DNA from: Magallana gigas
Lineage: Eukaryota
Assembly: GCF_963853765.1 (NCBI RefSeq)
Contig: NC_088858.1
Coordinates: 6,696,001 to 6,760,000 of the forward strand
Direction: 5' to 3'
DNA length: 64,000 nt
Numbering within the stretch: position 1 is the first letter of the stretch; each line of letters begins with the position of its first letter. Under the pieces are notes generated by a model that was given only the letters and a program-made list of their open reading frames with translations, searched no databases and was not told the DNA's origin. Positions 36,401 through 40,644 of this stretch are shown here, piece after piece. Both the position numbers and the translations under genes were made by a program.

Positions 36401-39400
36401 TAGATTTTTTTTGAATGGGTATCCAGTTTTATATGTTTGTTGATGAGGGCATCAACATAATTGCGCGGGGGAGATATGTAATGGTTAAAATTATACGTGG
36501 TATTTGCGCGAATCGCGTGCCGTATATTTTACCTGTGTTTATTCTATTTATAGAGTTTCTGTTCAGCGCAAATTCTTTTTTTTAGAGATTATGTTTCTTT
36601 AAACTTATTAAAAATATCTTTTGAACATTTATCTAGTTGTTTTCGATTCTATTATGATAATCAGCAAAGTGAGACTAATTTGTGAAATTATTTATTTACT
36701 TATTATAATATTTGAGATTTAAACTAGTCTAACAAGTTTATACGGAGTCTCACTTCGCTGACGCCCTTGAGAGTGTTCAGGTGTGAAACGGGTGAAACGT
36801 GTGAGTGATACTAGTACCTTACATTATTTACGTCATACCTGTTGGAAGTGAGTGCGCTAGTCTACTAATTGACTGTGTGTGGCACCGCCGCCATATATTG
36901 GAGTAGCTCATTGCCAATAAATTTAATATTTAATTGAAATAAAGAACTTGAACAGAATAAGCGATTTTATTCTATTACATACTGATACATATGTAACAGA
37001 GACACTTATTGCCTCTGCTGGGGTTTGAACCCAGGTGCTCTGGCACACCAGTCCAGCACTCTACCGATCGAGCTAAAGGGTTAACCCGCTAGCCAGAGCT
37101 AGTAGGAATGCCATATACCTGACTCTACCACATTGTCCCCCTCCAAGGAGAGAGGTGTCCCGACTCTCCTGGAGTGCCAGCACCTATGGGGCAAAGTACA
37201 AGAGACAATATCTCTCACCCGCCAGAGAATACCCAGGTCCCAATGTGGGCGTCAAATGTAACAGAGACACTTAATGCCTCTGCTGGGGTTTGAACCCAGG
37301 TCCTGCCAGTCCAGCACTCTACCGATCGAGCTAAAGGGTTAACCCGCTAGCCAGAGCTAGTAGGAATGCCATATACCTGACTCTACCACACATATTGTGA
37401 TAATTTTCATACATCATATTTTTTTGCAAATATGAATCTTGAAAGTTCATCGCACAATAAATAGTTTTGTACAAAATAAATGCAAAAGTGTGAGTTTTTA
37501 CTCCTTTAGAATTTGTTAACTCATTTTATTATAAAAACAAAACAAAATAATAAACACACACAGACTGAAGTTTACTTGTAAAGACAAACAAATTGCCAGA
37601 AGACTTACCCCTGTGTTGTTGATTCTTTATTCTGAACATAATCTTCCAATACAGCTACTGACTCCACAGAAGGGACATCTCCAACATCCTCAAGGAAACA
37701 ACTCGTCACAGTTCTGTCAGACAGCTCATCCACCTAGTGACGGAGAGACAAAAAATATATAAAACCAAGCATTGTCCAAAACCGTTTTTGCTGGCTTAAA
37801 ATTTATGAGTTAACTGCTTTTCTCCTCTGGAGAGGAGTGGATCATAAAACCTTGATTAACAAAGGTGGGTCCAAAACAATATCAACAATTCTTTAACATA
37901 TGCCAATGTTTTCCTTTCTTAATAATTCCATTCATATCTAAGATATCTTTAGAAAGATCATTTCTTTGACCTACTGTATAAGAATCATTACGGTATATGT
38001 AGTTCACCTTTTCACTTTGTCTAGGTTGAGGTGGCTCAGGTTCATCAAAATCTCCAAAGTCCCCGAAATCGTCCCCACCCCCCTCCTGCCACTCATCCTC
38101 CTCCCCGTCTTTCCACTGACCACTGCCCTGGTTGCTCCATTCATCCTTGGGATTTTCAGTATCATCTTTAGCTACTGTGTTCTCAGTGGTTTCCTGAAAT
38201 GAAGCCCAATTACCACTGTCTTCCCCAGTTGCCTCCCCTGAAAAGGCTGCAAACTGACCATCGGATTCACTCCTATCAGCATCTCTTTGAGCTGCAGAGT
38301 CAAAATCAGCAAAGTCATCAAAATCATCGTCATCATCATCATCATGTTTTATCACAGTACTTTCACTTTTGATGATATTGTCCTCTGTTGGGTCTGCAAA
38401 CTTTAGATCAGGATTTTTTTCATCTGATTCATTATTCTCACTGATTACTTCTGTATTATTAGATGGGGAAGAGTTTAAATCTGCAAAGTCATCAAATTTA
38501 TCATCATCTTCATCGTCATCATCATCATCATCTTGTTTTAGCACTGTACATTCACTACTAGTTTTAGTGTCCTCTGTCAAGGGAGAGGACTTCTCCTGAT
38601 CATCTAATTTATTTTCACTGTAAACCTCTGTATCCTCATTGGATGGAGAAGAGTTAAAATCAGCAAAGTCATCAAAACCATCATCATTATCAGGTTTAAT
38701 TATATCACTCTTTTTATTTTCCTGAGCCTCGGTTTTGTTATTTTCTTCATTAGCCTGCACTTCATCACTAAATGGAGCAGAGTCAAAATCTGCAAAGTCA
38801 TCAAATTCATCATCCTCTTCAGCATTGTTTGGAACACTGGTAACACTGCTGTCAGATATCTCCTCTTTCTCCTTGCATGCATCAATAACATCTCCTTTTG
38901 TATGAGCAAGATTTTGATCTTTTTCAATTGATAATGATACACCCTTTGAATGAACTTCTGTTGTAGTTAAGACATCATCTTGCTCTTCTTCATTCTCACA
39001 ATATTTGTCATCCCCATTTGAACTTGTGTTTATAATGGCCCCATTTTTCATTTCAGAGATATCTTTTATACTTTCACTTTCCTGATAAAGGTCCTGAGTC
39101 TGGGTTTTCTCCTCAAAATATGAATCAGATAAAGATGAAGGGTTCTCATCTGTTTCACTTATTTCTGCCTCAAAGTTTTTACTTTGAACTGATATGGATT
39201 TCTCATTTTCCTTATCTCTTATATCTAAAACATCAGATGTAGATGAATTTATGTTTTCATTTAAATTCCTACTGCCCTCCCCTTCAGAAATGGTATTTGT
39301 ATTTCCTTCTTCATTGCCTTTACCAGTTTGGGGATCATATGTAGAAGTAGAGTCTTCATGAATACCAGCTTTACTTTTATCACTCACAGAGTCTTGCACT

Positions 39401-40035
39401 GAGATTTCAATCTCAGAATTCACTGTTTGATTGGAATCAAACTTATCCGTTTCTGATGAACCAGAAGTATGGATGTCACTATGATCTTCAACTAAAGATT
39501 CAGGGCTGGTTTCAAAGTTTCTAAAATCCCCATTAGAATCTTCATTTAGAACTTCAGATGGACTAGAAGGATCGATGGGTTCATGAAGGGTTTTTCCTGC
39601 ACCATTACCCTTATCACAATTTTTAAGAGGATCACTGGGTGAAACCTCTGAGCTAAAAAGTCCGGAGTCAACATGTGGAACTGTGCCTAATCCCTTTTGC
39701 AACACACTTTCTATACAATGACTACTGTTCAGATCTAATCCAGAATCACTACTTGTTATCAAACTACTACCATCTGCATCAAGTTTGAGTTCCATTGACT
39801 TTGTAGAAATCTTTTCCTCGGTAATGTTAGAATTTTCCTGTGTTGATGTGGCATTTTTTGTGGGAGTGTTATTTGAGCCAGAATCAGAAAAGGCTGCCCA
39901 GTCCTGCGACACACTGTTCTCTGATACATCATGACCAGCTCCCATGAAGTTTCCAAAGTCTTCATCCCAATCATCACCCTCCTCCTCATCAAATGGGGGA
40001 GGCGATGATGACACCATTGGATATACCCCCGACAT
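24415..40035 (-). CDS. AFTPH: Aftiphilin (AP-1/clathrin accessory protein); 916 aa, 920 with the microexon
   Basis: Exons 40035-38008, 37733-37609, 30013-29893, 29770-29633, 29100-29043, 27642-27571, optional 26971-26960, 24623-24415; phase-consistent (2751 nt without the microexon). Hallmarks: N-terminal MVSSSPPPFDEE, WAAF/DDFGDF/DDFADF motifs, KWSQSRSSKQLLSSLHIDTRNI, PIYASNLTLLEPTK, PPVQFDWSSSGLTNPL, clathrin-box-like SLDLDF, C-terminal LPDLSFMQAKVLMFP. Confidence 0.95.
25101..25415 (+). mobile_element. Kolobok-type 315-bp TIR element with an internal tRNA-like Pol III cassette
   Basis: TTAA flanks at 25097-25100 and 25416-25419. TIR GGTGGTATAGGACA / TGTCCCATACCACC. A-box TAGCGCAGTGG (25210-25220) and B-box GTTCGAATCC (25253-25262). 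Confidence 0.8.
25549..25622. repeat. Short palindromic element
   Basis: TTAGACTTGTAGATCCGCTC ... GAGCGGATCTAAGTTCTAA imperfect inverted arms. Confidence 0.55.
26211..26760 (-). mobile_element. Helentron/HINE-like element, reverse orientation
   Basis: One end reads GAGGTCCATGGGCCACATCACTCACCTGAG and the other AAGCTCATTTTGGACTTCAGCTCTGGTGAGCTAAAA, the reverse of the TTTTAGCTCACC terminus at 1510. Confidence 0.6.
26960..26971 (-). CDS. AFTPH: Candidate 12-nt microexon of AFTPH, adding EWDW
   Basis: The reverse strand reads GTTTCTTTTCTATTCACTGCTAATTGTAG|AGTGGGATTGGG|GTAAGC: pyrimidine tract, CTAAT branch-like motif, AG, 12 nt, strong donor. It is frame-preserving between two phase-1 boundaries. 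Confidence 0.7.
30097..30599 (+). repeat. 5' LTR of the Gypsy element
   Basis: 503 bp, TG..CA ends, AATAAA near the 3' end. No difference from the 3' LTR was found by eye. Confidence 0.98.
30603..30620 (+). promoter_or_regulatory. Primer-binding site, probably tRNA-Ser
   Basis: TGGCGTCGTGGACAGGAT lies 3 nt after the LTR. Its complement ATCCTGTCCACGACGCCA has a CCA end and a G discriminator, as in tRNA-Ser 3' ends. The tRNA identity is inference. Confidence 0.75.
30975..32078 (+). CDS. gag: Gag polyprotein (capsid plus CCHC zinc knuckle); 367 aa
   Basis: Open frame from ATG 30975 with an N-terminal coiled coil, a capsid-like region (EWLDDARQHL...MLKERFVEGIRD) and the knuckle CFRCGGKGHKEQDC. 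Confidence 0.93.
   Translation: MPTKNEIKELFDREREKSDQLESEVLLLHRRLKKAEHELSLKDEEMKQKSDSNPNKTVFVAREKKIARLCGRPVKESDPDVAEWLDDARQHLKVINDNDARIDFLMDNLGGQAKDEIRLRPRLERDTAERILEIIKSVFASTETLGALQQQFYQRDQKHGELLQNYSLALMKLLDKIVAKDENAVTDFDEMLKERFVEGIRDSSLRREIRRFSFEKKAMSFGEFRQKKLQWSEDYKNEPLSKSFSAHEITSQESVKSKVVKDQSEDQLSEILKILKLQQTQIDENQKELKKLSEAMKTSKPQYENKYLQGRQFPNVRQSHITCFRCGGKGHKEQDCSTQLDTSSFSRKGKSQGASFSNLPLNEKRLL
32048..36355 (+). CDS. pol: Pol polyprotein (protease, RT, RNase H, integrase) in the -1 frame relative to gag
   Basis: The frame opens after TAA 32045-32047 and has no stop until 36355. Motifs: protease LIDTGSQVS, RT LRLCVDYRRLN and YLDDILIF, RNase H VETDASYDGLGAVL, integrase HHCC (HDSSGH..CERC) and DDE core (MDF, LHSDQG, ERFNRTL). 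Confidence 0.97.
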   Translation, partial: SSFKREASVVESRPADERAETKDSIDQRIIDRVIGQCPVVTVQIEGKPISCLIDTGSQVSTITESYFRDLLKSEPKLIDVTKWMKVSGANHLPIPYIGYIEVVIDTAHGSVPNVGVLVVNDTTDQYGKQKKLQVPGVLGSNFFRILKEQVEQNLYSVTEHNDQLLNTLSIFEMSTSISGSKKLSFVKVAGQDPIKIPANSMKVVIGTTRQTSRNFSGLVQAVHGNYGTLPKNTLLIDTYADVENGKIPVRVVNIGDEDVWLNPKSRLGILHDVEVEFASQPNCHAEIEVRNQEINVSIESIQKWKDHDVKAVVSTKNAIQIHGVEVDIGENLSVEEKERLISILNTHQDVFSKNSDDLGFTDTVKHKILTSDEVPIKLPHRRIPPNQIEEVKSHIQTLLKQGIIRPSTSPYGAAVVLVRKKDGSLRLCVDYRRLNLKTIKDAFPIPRIEEALDALHGAKFFSTLDLAQGFYQVQMDEHDCHKTAFRVGPLGLYEFVRMPFGLCNSPSTFQRLMEACLGDKNFEILLLYLDDILIFSQSFDEHLERLVFVFDRLRAHNLKIKPSKCHFFHKEVNYLGHVVSEDGVKVNPDKIAVIKDWKTPQTEKDLRSFLGLAGYYRKFIKGFSQIAAPLHSVLTKQEKKVTGKKMVTKEIPFKQKWNADCDNAFEKLKSCLTSTPVLGFPNFSSPFIVETDASYDGLGAVLSQQQESGKVVISYASRSLRPGERNMSNYSSMKLELLALKWAITEKFRDYLLGSSFIVYTDNNPLSYLKTSKLAASELRWASELAQFNFDIRYRSGKANKNADSLSRMYRESNSEEILADFSQSTSLREIITDYQRLETDKDLEITERKELTPILPGYTNEELRKLQTEDPDINRVFQWLETGHKPTSRQISRERREVRKFLRKFHLLQLKNGVLYMTSKGLDGEYLQLAIPECLRPQIMESLHDSSGHQGRERTMALIKKRCYWPGMIADVVRWIERCERCMIAKTPIPTIRPSLGNLLAKRPLEILAMDFTLLEKTSDGFENVLVLTDVFTKYTMAIPTKNQKASTVAKHLVNEWFHKIGIPSRLHSDQGRNFEGEVVKELCKIYGIKKSRSTPYHPEGNSQCERFNRTLHDRLRTLDADQKRKWTMYLPELVYVYNVTPHSSTGFSPYYLLYGREPKLPVDFLLGINNDSESFEVDEWLHTHRERLRYAWAAAEKNTEKSAEKRREFHERKSTHCSIDVGTKVLLRNHVQGRNKIQDVWKPDPYIITEKLQENVYKVKSADGYDDVKVLHRNEILDTKEKAQNDIDPCEEPDSDEEIKTFEVTEIENEGDNPDPESQVSLDENDNKQESMPPEDNIAENKQSDILDSPLQLTPGQSPTDNKVSVGHGQEIPLRRSNRSTAGKHPNPFNLPKSVLSRNMSVNADSSSSEFQDFGNAVAALGASLSASLSQTF
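32054..32118 (+). promoter_or_regulatory. -1 programmed ribosomal frameshift signal
   Basis: Slippery heptamer T TTA AAC at 32054-32060 in the gag frame, 6-nt spacer, stem CGTCTGTTG (32067-75) / CAGCGGACG (32088-96). Loop GAGTC can pair with downstream GACTC (32114-18). Confidence 0.85.
36465..36476 (+). promoter_or_regulatory. Polypurine tract of the Gypsy element
   Basis: G-rich GCGGGGGAGATA immediately precedes the 3' LTR. Confidence 0.8.
36477..36979 (+). repeat. 3' LTR of the Gypsy element
   Basis: 503 bp, matches the 5' LTR, followed by the TSD TACT. Confidence 0.98.
36992..37390 (-). mobile_element. Miniature LTR retrotransposon (TRIM) with tRNA-like LTRs, Helenus/TRIMp3-like; 399 bp
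   Basis: Direct repeats at 36992-37132 (141 bp) and 37257-37390 (134 bp) with TG..CA ends and a 4-bp TSD CATA. On the minus strand there is a PBS-like TGACGCCCACATTGGGAC after the 5' LTR and a PPT GGAGGGGGACAA before the 3' LTR. Each LTR holds the A-box TAGCTCGATCGGTAGAG and the B-box GGTTCAAACC. Confidence 0.9.
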
Positions 40036-40644
40036 TCTGTACTGAATGTGAGGTTCAAGTTTCACTGATTCTTCATACTGACCTACAGACAGTATAACAA
40101 CAAAGTTAGCATATAAAACTTCATCAAGATCATCAAAGTATTAAAAACAGTGAAACATGAATTGAACAGCTGCTATTCACAGATGACAGAGAGAGGATGT
40201 ACATCAAAGATTAAATCATAATTAACATATATTAATCGTTTCATCACATTGTGACGAAACCGTTAATTTAAAGAAGTGCTTATTTCACTATAGCTGAAAG
40301 CAAAATTGTACGCAAATCATACCGAAAGTGTCAATTCAGGAACTAAGGTACACCTGTCTGTAAATTTGACAACTCCCGTCATGCAATTCATATCCTGAAT
40401 TTTTAGTAAAGCGTACTGTTTCTTTTCGGACAGGACAACCAATAAATCTGTCCACCATATTTCACCGAAATACTATATATGTTCGCCATTGTAATTCATA
40501 AGAGAGAACTAAAGTCGTTATTCAAGAAAAATGCACAAAAAACTAAGAGTGCTGAGAAATTTGCCAAAATATGAATGTAATATGAAATATTGGACATTTA
40601 AACGTACAAGTTAACTTAAATTTTACTTTCATTTTAGAAAAAAT

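Follow-up and report, generated by a model that had tools for sequence, protein, structure and literature searches.

The question raised by positions 36992-37390 of a 64,000-nucleotide stretch of Magallana (Crassostrea) gigas DNA (contig NC_088858.1, positions 6,696,001 to 6,760,000; this whole stretch is called the window below) is what kind of sequence holds two neighboring repeats that each contain a tRNA-like module: functional tRNA genes, a duplicated short interspersed element (SINE), or a retroelement with long terminal repeats (LTRs). Our analysis indicates that the locus is very probably one insertion of Helenus-1_CGi, a nonautonomous oyster terminal-repeat retrotransposon in miniature (TRIM) with a tRNA-derived module in its LTRs, which is the best explanation overall. 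Both the class and the family are already published; the locus is a copy of a known family and carries no novelty at either level.

Structure of the element

A repeat search, together with reading of the sequence, identified on the minus strand of 36992-37390 a 399-nt miniature LTR element (141 + 124 + 134 nt), in which direct repeats of 141 nt and 134 nt, starting with TG and ending with CA on both strands, enclose a noncoding interior of 124 nt (37133-37256). In element order, the 134-nt 5' LTR (37390 to 37257) is followed by TT, an 18-nt sequence resembling a primer binding site (PBS; TGACGCCCACATTGGGAC, 37237-37254), the remaining interior, a polypurine tract (PPT; GGAGGGGGACAA, 37133-37144), and, directly abutting it, the 141-nt 3' LTR (37132 to 36992, TGTGGTAG...CTGTTACA). 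Between the two LTRs there are one 7-nt gap and, depending on the alignment, 1 to 3 substitutions. CATA (plus strand; TATG in element orientation) is present on both flanks, at 36988-36991 on the element's 3' side and at 37391-37394 on its 5' side, forming a 4-bp target site duplication (TSD), as in animal Helenus elements. The first-pass annotation had described the two TG..CA repeats, the CATA duplication, the 124-bp noncoding interior, and the PPT, and each was recovered where it had been placed; so were its minus-strand palindromes, a hairpin CTAGC-TCTG-GCTAG and the palindrome GGGTTAACCC.

With short LTRs, a short noncoding interior, and a total length of 399 nt (TRIMs being under about 1.3 kb), the window copy has the architecture of a TRIM, and its PBS position, PPT position, 4-bp TSD, and A and B boxes in each LTR are those of a Helenus element. 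A packaging signal in the form of interior RNA structure was considered and dropped, since the fold of the interior was no more stable than that of shuffled sequence (z = -0.35). The copy is decayed, having a 7-nt deletion in the module of its 5' LTR, 2 changes in the PBS, and 12 changes in the interior, and it is probably no longer mobile.

Identity with Helenus-1_CGi

Helenus elements were described by Kojima 2024 (Biology 13:119, PMC10886601) as TRIMs with tRNA-derived LTRs and, in animals, a 4-bp TSD, and 51 families were reported from pteriomorph bivalves, including Crassostrea gigas (PMC10886601). The first-pass annotation had pointed to this class under the names Helenus and TRIMp3, with tRNA-like LTRs, 4-bp animal TSDs, and neither transcription nor a mobilizing partner shown experimentally, in agreement with that paper. 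It had also proposed a comparison with Helenus entries. Searching DataS1 of PMC10886601 with short motifs from the element led to Helenus-1_CGi, so the family is catalogued; identities to its consensus were counted by eye. The 3' LTR of the window copy is identical to the consensus at 137 of 141 positions (two of the four differences are C>T changes at CpG), and the interior at 112 of 124, with equal lengths. Table S1 (PMC10886601) gives an LTR of 141, an interior of 139, and a TSD of 4; the last 15 nt of the interior as printed belong to the LTR, which leaves a true length of 124. The window copy and the published family thus agree in LTR (141), interior (124), and TSD (4) lengths, in the TT spacer, in the PPT GGAGGGGGACAA, which is the same tract in the published interior consensus, and in the termini TGTGGTAG..CTGTTACA. 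They differ in the PBS, where the consensus reads TGGCGCCCACGTTGGGA and the window copy has two G>A changes, and in the 7-nt deletion of the 5' LTR, which is private to the window copy.

Dispersed copies and the SINE alternative

A tRNA-like head resembling those of SINE2 elements, present in two repeats lying close together, could also be produced by local tandem duplication of a tRNA-derived SINE with no LTR element involved. We therefore turn to the distribution of the sequence in the genome (564 Mb, 29 contigs), from which coordinates beginning with G000 are taken. A search with the element returned at least 42 scored matches out of 297 candidates. With up to 3 mismatches tolerated, an LTR-specific 29-mer had 229 sites and an interior-specific 30-mer had 50, against 0 for the reversed controls, which excludes chance; these counts are of the same order as the 219 LTRs and 28 interiors listed for Helenus-1_CGi in oyster_v9 (Table S3, PMC10886601). 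The LTR-interior-LTR unit is found again, at constant dimensions, on each of the ten large contigs (C1-C10). Perfect and different 4-bp TSDs flank at least 13 independent insertions, among them the window copy (CATA), the others being TATA, ATAA, CTAT, TAAG, GTAT, ATTA, CAAA, TTTC, GTTA, CTAC, TTAC, and CCTA.

The first-pass annotation had held that a lack of further copies with TSDs would point to a duplicated SINE; instead, many other copies with their own TSDs, as well as a tandem array, were found. Because at least 13 independent copies carry different perfect 4-bp TSDs, local duplication of a SINE is refuted and has a negligible likelihood. The PBS and PPT, moreover, lie right at the borders of the LTRs, no tail of the A-rich or LINE-like kind is present, and the LTR-PBS-PPT-LTR structure, foreign to tRNA-derived SINEs, recurs genome-wide. 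The LTR pairs also bear on the age of Helenus-1: those of locus L005 are identical and those of L003 and L006 are one base apart, so the family was active recently.

Several copies have unusual arrangements. At L004/L007 (G000:C5:21770121-21770792), a tandem LTR-I-LTR-I-LTR array of Helenus-1, where I is the interior, lies within a single TSD, TATA. The same insertion is found four times at G000:C8:35.06-35.20 Mb (L012, L014, L016, and L017), with shared flanks and TSD TTTC at a spacing of ~45 kb; these four are a tandem segmental duplication with a unit of roughly 45 kb. On C1, four loci between 0.78 and 3.74 Mb (L031, L032, L034, and L035 in G000) consist of a full LTR, 152 to 383 nt of foreign sequence, the interior, and an LTR truncated at position 78, a recurrent rearranged form that is repeated on C1, probably inside a larger duplicated unit. 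L039 and L040 were considered as a long element with Helenus LTRs and a third type of interior. This was rejected: their upstream flanks are shared and the supposed interior is common C1 repeat DNA, and the two are one truncated copy in a segmental duplication.

The tRNA-like module

The Rfam tRNA model (RF00005) matched the full-length 3' LTR at 37018-37075 (minus strand) over model positions 8 to 63 of 71, with 31.8 bits against a gathering score of 29, and the deleted 5' LTR at 37283-37333 with 17.9 bits. The alignment contains a D-arm GCUC/GAGU, the loop CUGGUGU, and a perfect T-arm CUGGG/CCCAG. Each LTR has a box A (TRGCY..YGG) and a box B (GGTTC), namely TAGCTCGATCGG and GGTTCAAACCC, which in the 3' LTR lie at about 37064-37075 and about 37021-37031, respectively. 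The acceptor stem is outside the Rfam match, and at most 3 of its 7 pairs can form. The pseudo-tRNA reported by the first-pass annotation, with this D-arm, an anticodon loop CTGGTGT, and a broken acceptor stem, is therefore seen again in the Rfam alignment. Its perfect T-arm is present in the window copy but does not hold as a feature of the family: it occurs in the window copy and some others only, arises by a C>T change, and is replaced by a mismatched arm in L005.

Since one module exceeds the Rfam gathering score, functional tRNA genes have to be considered, and the first-pass annotation had named them as an outcome that would overturn its reading. We regard them as extremely improbable. 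The match spans only model positions 8 to 63, few acceptor pairs are available, the other modules score 17.9 to 21.9 bits, and neither the window nor 8 further loci yielded a tRNA call from ARAGORN. As to annotation, the locus is settled as a copy of Helenus-1_CGi; it is neither a SINE dimer nor a tRNA gene, and it does not represent a new class of element.

Alignment of the LTRs also bore out an earlier observation that the 5' LTR (in element orientation) has lost 7 nt from the anticodon arm while boxes A and B remain intact; among 26 aligned LTRs, this deletion was private to the window copy. A recurrent 5'-LTR deletion was considered as a signature of error during reverse transcription and rejected: L011 likewise has a 134-nt 5' LTR, but it lost 7 nt in the T-loop and not in the anticodon arm, and the shared length is a coincidence.

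Relatives in other oysters and similar elements

In Crassostrea virginica, Helenus-2_CVi has an LTR nearly identical to that of Helenus-1 from about position 17 to 122, the same type of PBS, and the same PPT. It differs over the initial 16 and final 20 bases of the LTR and over the 3' third of the interior, and there the window copy follows the C. gigas version; the first 16 LTR bases of the copies in the studied genome are likewise of the C. gigas type. For Helenus-3_SaGl of Saccostrea glomerata, Fig. S2C shows the same PBS line, and the element measures 141/125 nt. Judged by these similarities, the two look like the orthologous lineage in other oysters.

The combination of a SINE-type promoter with LTR-type replication gives the Helenus class some general interest. 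Cassandra of plants and Ajax of nemerteans also place a Pol III-type small-RNA module in both LTRs of a TRIM chassis (Pol III and Pol II denote RNA polymerases III and II), and Kojima 2024 (PMC10886601) groups them with Helenus as TRIMp3. Their module, in contrast, is derived from 5S rRNA with a type 1 promoter (box A, IE, and box C), their TSD is 5 bp, and they have no sequence relation to Helenus-1. SINE2 elements share with Helenus-1 a tRNA-like head with A and B boxes, a short length, and nonautonomy, but have no LTR, PBS, or PPT; their tail is LINE-related or A-rich, they rely on LINE target-primed reverse transcription for copying, and their TSDs vary. The bivalve TRIM family biv-TRIM (Satovic et al. 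2019, PMC6934838), which occurs in the Pacific oyster as well, was considered as the same element and set apart as a separate family by its PBS, interior motif, and LTR description: it lacks a canonical PBS, has a conserved interior motif TGATCCCAAAGGAC, and is reported without a tRNA-like LTR (PMC6934838).

Transcription by Pol III or Pol II

We slightly favor Pol III as the main polymerase of Helenus-1, judging from sequence features. On this model, the genomic RNA would be started by Pol III from the A and B boxes of the 5' LTR, at about LTR position 45 to 50, and would run through an element free of T4 into the 3' LTR; by reading into the 3' LTR, the transcript would gain the terminal repeat on which strand transfer depends. 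Helenus-1 copies retain boxes A and B, whose key invariant positions are also kept across Helenus families, and the LTR is strongly conserved between oyster species. The element falls within the 311-1263 bp range that Kojima 2024 (PMC10886601) relates to Pol III processivity, and Pol III-type transcripts have been reported for the analogous Cassandra (cited in PMC10886601). The sense strand lacks TTTT in 11 of 13 full copies. We do not take this absence as proof of Pol III read-through: it is compatible with it, but the evidence is weak because all copies descend from one sequence.

The same Helenus-1 TRIM could instead be transcribed by Pol II, like ordinary LTR elements, an alternative of appreciable weight though clearly short of even. 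Start and end signals of the Pol II kind are at hand, in a TATA-like element at LTR positions 16 to 22 (TATATGG, ~30 nt upstream of the predicted start for either polymerase) and in AATAAG, which lies near the LTR end, 14 nt before it. The tRNA-like module would then have another role, for example as R-region structure, in packaging, or in RNase P/Z processing, or would be left over from the insertion of a SINE. Its imperfect cloverleaf agrees with such a role. In L005, the youngest copy seen, the T-arm has a mismatch and the module scores 21.9 bits, under the Rfam threshold, and the LTR does not form a cloverleaf in its minimum-energy fold. Conservation between C. gigas and the C. virginica consensus (nearly identical from LTR position ~17 to 122) extends over the LTR as a whole and is not confined to the boxes.

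These start and end signals, the condition of the module in L005, the broad interspecies conservation, and the limited value of T4 absence weigh against Pol III transcription or are neutral toward it. The literature also weighs against it: Pol III transcription and mobilization have not been validated for any Helenus element (Kojima 2024, PMC10886601), and the term TRIMp3 was not met in later papers of the literature searched.

Primer tRNA

The first-pass annotation had matched the PBS to that of tRNA-Lys at about 13 of 18 positions. The assignment to tRNA-Lys stands; the figure does not, since the host tRNA-Lys(UUU) gives 16/18 for the window copy and 18/18 for intact copies. The primer was sought by predicting the 3' end of the tRNA and scanning the genome for box B followed by that end. 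This yielded 20 sites, mostly in one tandem array on C6, which ARAGORN identified as tRNA-Lys(UUU). The 3'-terminal 18 nt of this tRNA, CCA included, are exactly complementary to TGGCGCCCACGTTGGGAC, and the match is complete in 8 of the 13 full copies analyzed. Kojima 2024 (PMC10886601) instead aligned the PBS, with a gap, to Aplysia tRNA-Lys-CTT, whereas the match to the oyster tRNA is ungapped.

One copy, L013 (G000:C1:15519459-15519864; imperfect TSD, CATA/TATA), has the PBS TGGCGCCCAACGTGGGGC, which is perfectly complementary to the 3' terminus of tRNA-Lys(CUU)-type genes in this genome; the primer has apparently switched here from the Lys(UUU) to the Lys(CUU) isoacceptor. In the standard mechanism, plus-strand strong-stop synthesis renews the PBS by copying the primer tRNA. 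A Lys(CUU) PBS is what would be expected if such recopying took place in each cycle, and L013 thus fits, as indirect evidence, passage of Helenus-1 through tRNA-primed reverse transcription.

The source of the primer tRNA is a tandem array with ~2.3-kb units (L058 and G000:C6:42917733-42956287). The unit scanned, in L058, contains tRNA-Arg(CCU), tRNA-Lys(UUU), tRNA-Ala(UGC), and tRNA-SeC(UCA).

Candidate Gypsy partners

Copying of Helenus-1 would proceed by reverse transcription primed by a tRNA, with an autonomous Ty3/Gypsy element supplying the reverse transcriptase (RT) and integrase (INT) in trans for this and for insertion. Animal Helenus elements were inferred to depend on Gypsy elements by Kojima 2024 (PMC10886601); our PBS and junction results agree with this dependence and narrow it for Helenus-1. 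The 22-nt junction made up of the LTR end, TT, and the PBS has 114 sites in the genome at up to 3 mismatches, 21 of them exact. Eighteen of the exact sites are in Helenus-1 contexts; the others belong to a full-length element on C3 and to two chimeras.

The C3 element (L041, G000:C3:1738768-1747876, minus strand) is a 9.1-kb Ty3/Gypsy element with LTRs of 1075 nt (TGTAGGAG..CCCCTGTTACA) that are 99.8% alike, PPT AAAAGGAGGGGGAGTT, and TSD TTAT. It encodes an uninterrupted gag (PNMA-like capsid plus zinc knuckle) and frames for protease (PR), RT, RNaseH, and INT in the Ty3/Gypsy order. Its family has in common with Helenus-1 the LTR end CTGTTACA (terminal 8 bases), the TT spacer, the PBS, the PPT core GGAGGGGGA, and the 4-bp TSD, and it is the only PBS-sharing Gypsy family with the exact ACA-TT-PBS junction. 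By comparison, the PBS match of Gypsy-125_CGi, the tRNA-Lys example given for C. gigas by Kojima 2024 (PMC10886601), is much poorer. From these shared sequences, the C3 family appears to be the best partner candidate in the genome.

The first chimera, on C6, connects this family to Helenus-1 (L042:989-1099, continuing to about L042:3749; G000:C6:42466988-42469748). It begins with a 111-nt LTR-like unit that opens with the first 25 nt of the C3-family LTR and ends in the C3-type CCCCTGTTACA; between them, from TCGATCGG on, is a Helenus-1 tRNA-like module, which over 59 nt differs from the young copy L005 at one position. Next come TT, the PBS, and a 2.6-kb part of the C3-family interior at 95%, which is then truncated by unrelated repeats. 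The chimeric junction is unique in the genome and may have arisen by template switching between co-packaged RNAs or by rearrangement at the DNA level. That the C3 family is the autonomous partner of Helenus-1, and that L042 preserves a template switch between Helenus-1 and Gypsy RNAs packaged together, is a tentative proposal that we consider rather unlikely as a whole. If true, C3 and Helenus-1 would give an animal TRIMp3 its first concrete pairing of helper and parasite, and L042 would show tRNA-like modules moving into new LTR frames and founding new Helenus families.

Three observations count against this proposal. The C3 family is represented by one full-length copy, about 15 solo or related LTRs, and an interior at one other place; L042 is a single truncated locus that could stem from DNA rearrangement; and several other Gypsy families have the same PBS. 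At least five Ty3/Gypsy families of PR-RT-RNaseH-INT order carry the identical 18-nt PBS; beyond C3 these include four further families, with 4-bp TSDs in the three that have a mapped LTR pair. The partner may accordingly be another tRNA-Lys(UUU)-primed Gypsy family (of the L047, L050, L048, or L049 type), or several of them, to which we assign a likelihood approaching but not reaching even. Besides the PBS and TSDs, these types have near-identical LTR pairs; the C3 family has one full copy only; the PPT of the L050 family, AAAAGGAGGGGGAG, is that of Helenus-1; and the second, small chimera involves L049. In this chimera (L043:1036-1086, G000:C8:2170035-2170085), a 31-nt near-palindrome, TGTAACAGAG..CTCTGTTACA, is made up of two LTR ends, an inverted Helenus one and then a direct one; after it come TT, the PBS, and the interior of another Gypsy family, which is 98% identical to L049 over 2 kb. 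The LTR ends and spacers of these families nevertheless differ from those of Helenus-1 (CTGTAACA+TTT, CTGTTTCA+T, GTTACA+AAATT, and GTAACA+GAAA); only the C3 family has CTGTTACA+TT, and only there is a tRNA-like module found inside the family's own LTR frame.

The exact primer tRNA (Lys-UUU), the ranking of helpers, and one recombinant locus are modest additions to what was published for Helenus-1_CGi. They provide leads that can be checked in oysters: the Lys-UUU primer, re-templated to Lys-CUU in one copy, a shortlist of Gypsy elements with matching PBSs, and the recombinant locus.

Neighborhood of the window copy

An open frame of 727 aa at 37882-40065 (minus strand), 0.5 kb from the Helenus copy, had no Pfam match at E <= 1e-5. 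On the other side, 12 bp upstream in window coordinates, is a complete Ty3/Gypsy element at 30097-36979 (plus strand), with identical 503-nt LTRs (TGTAATGG..TCTATTACA), TSD TACT, PBS TGGCGTCGTGGACAGGA, a PNMA-like gag at 30951-32078, and pol at 32276-36355. It was considered as a helper and rejected; its PBS and LTR ends differ from those of Helenus-1, and on these grounds it is probably not the Helenus-1 helper. The identity of its LTRs suggests that this Gypsy element is younger than the adjoining Helenus copy.

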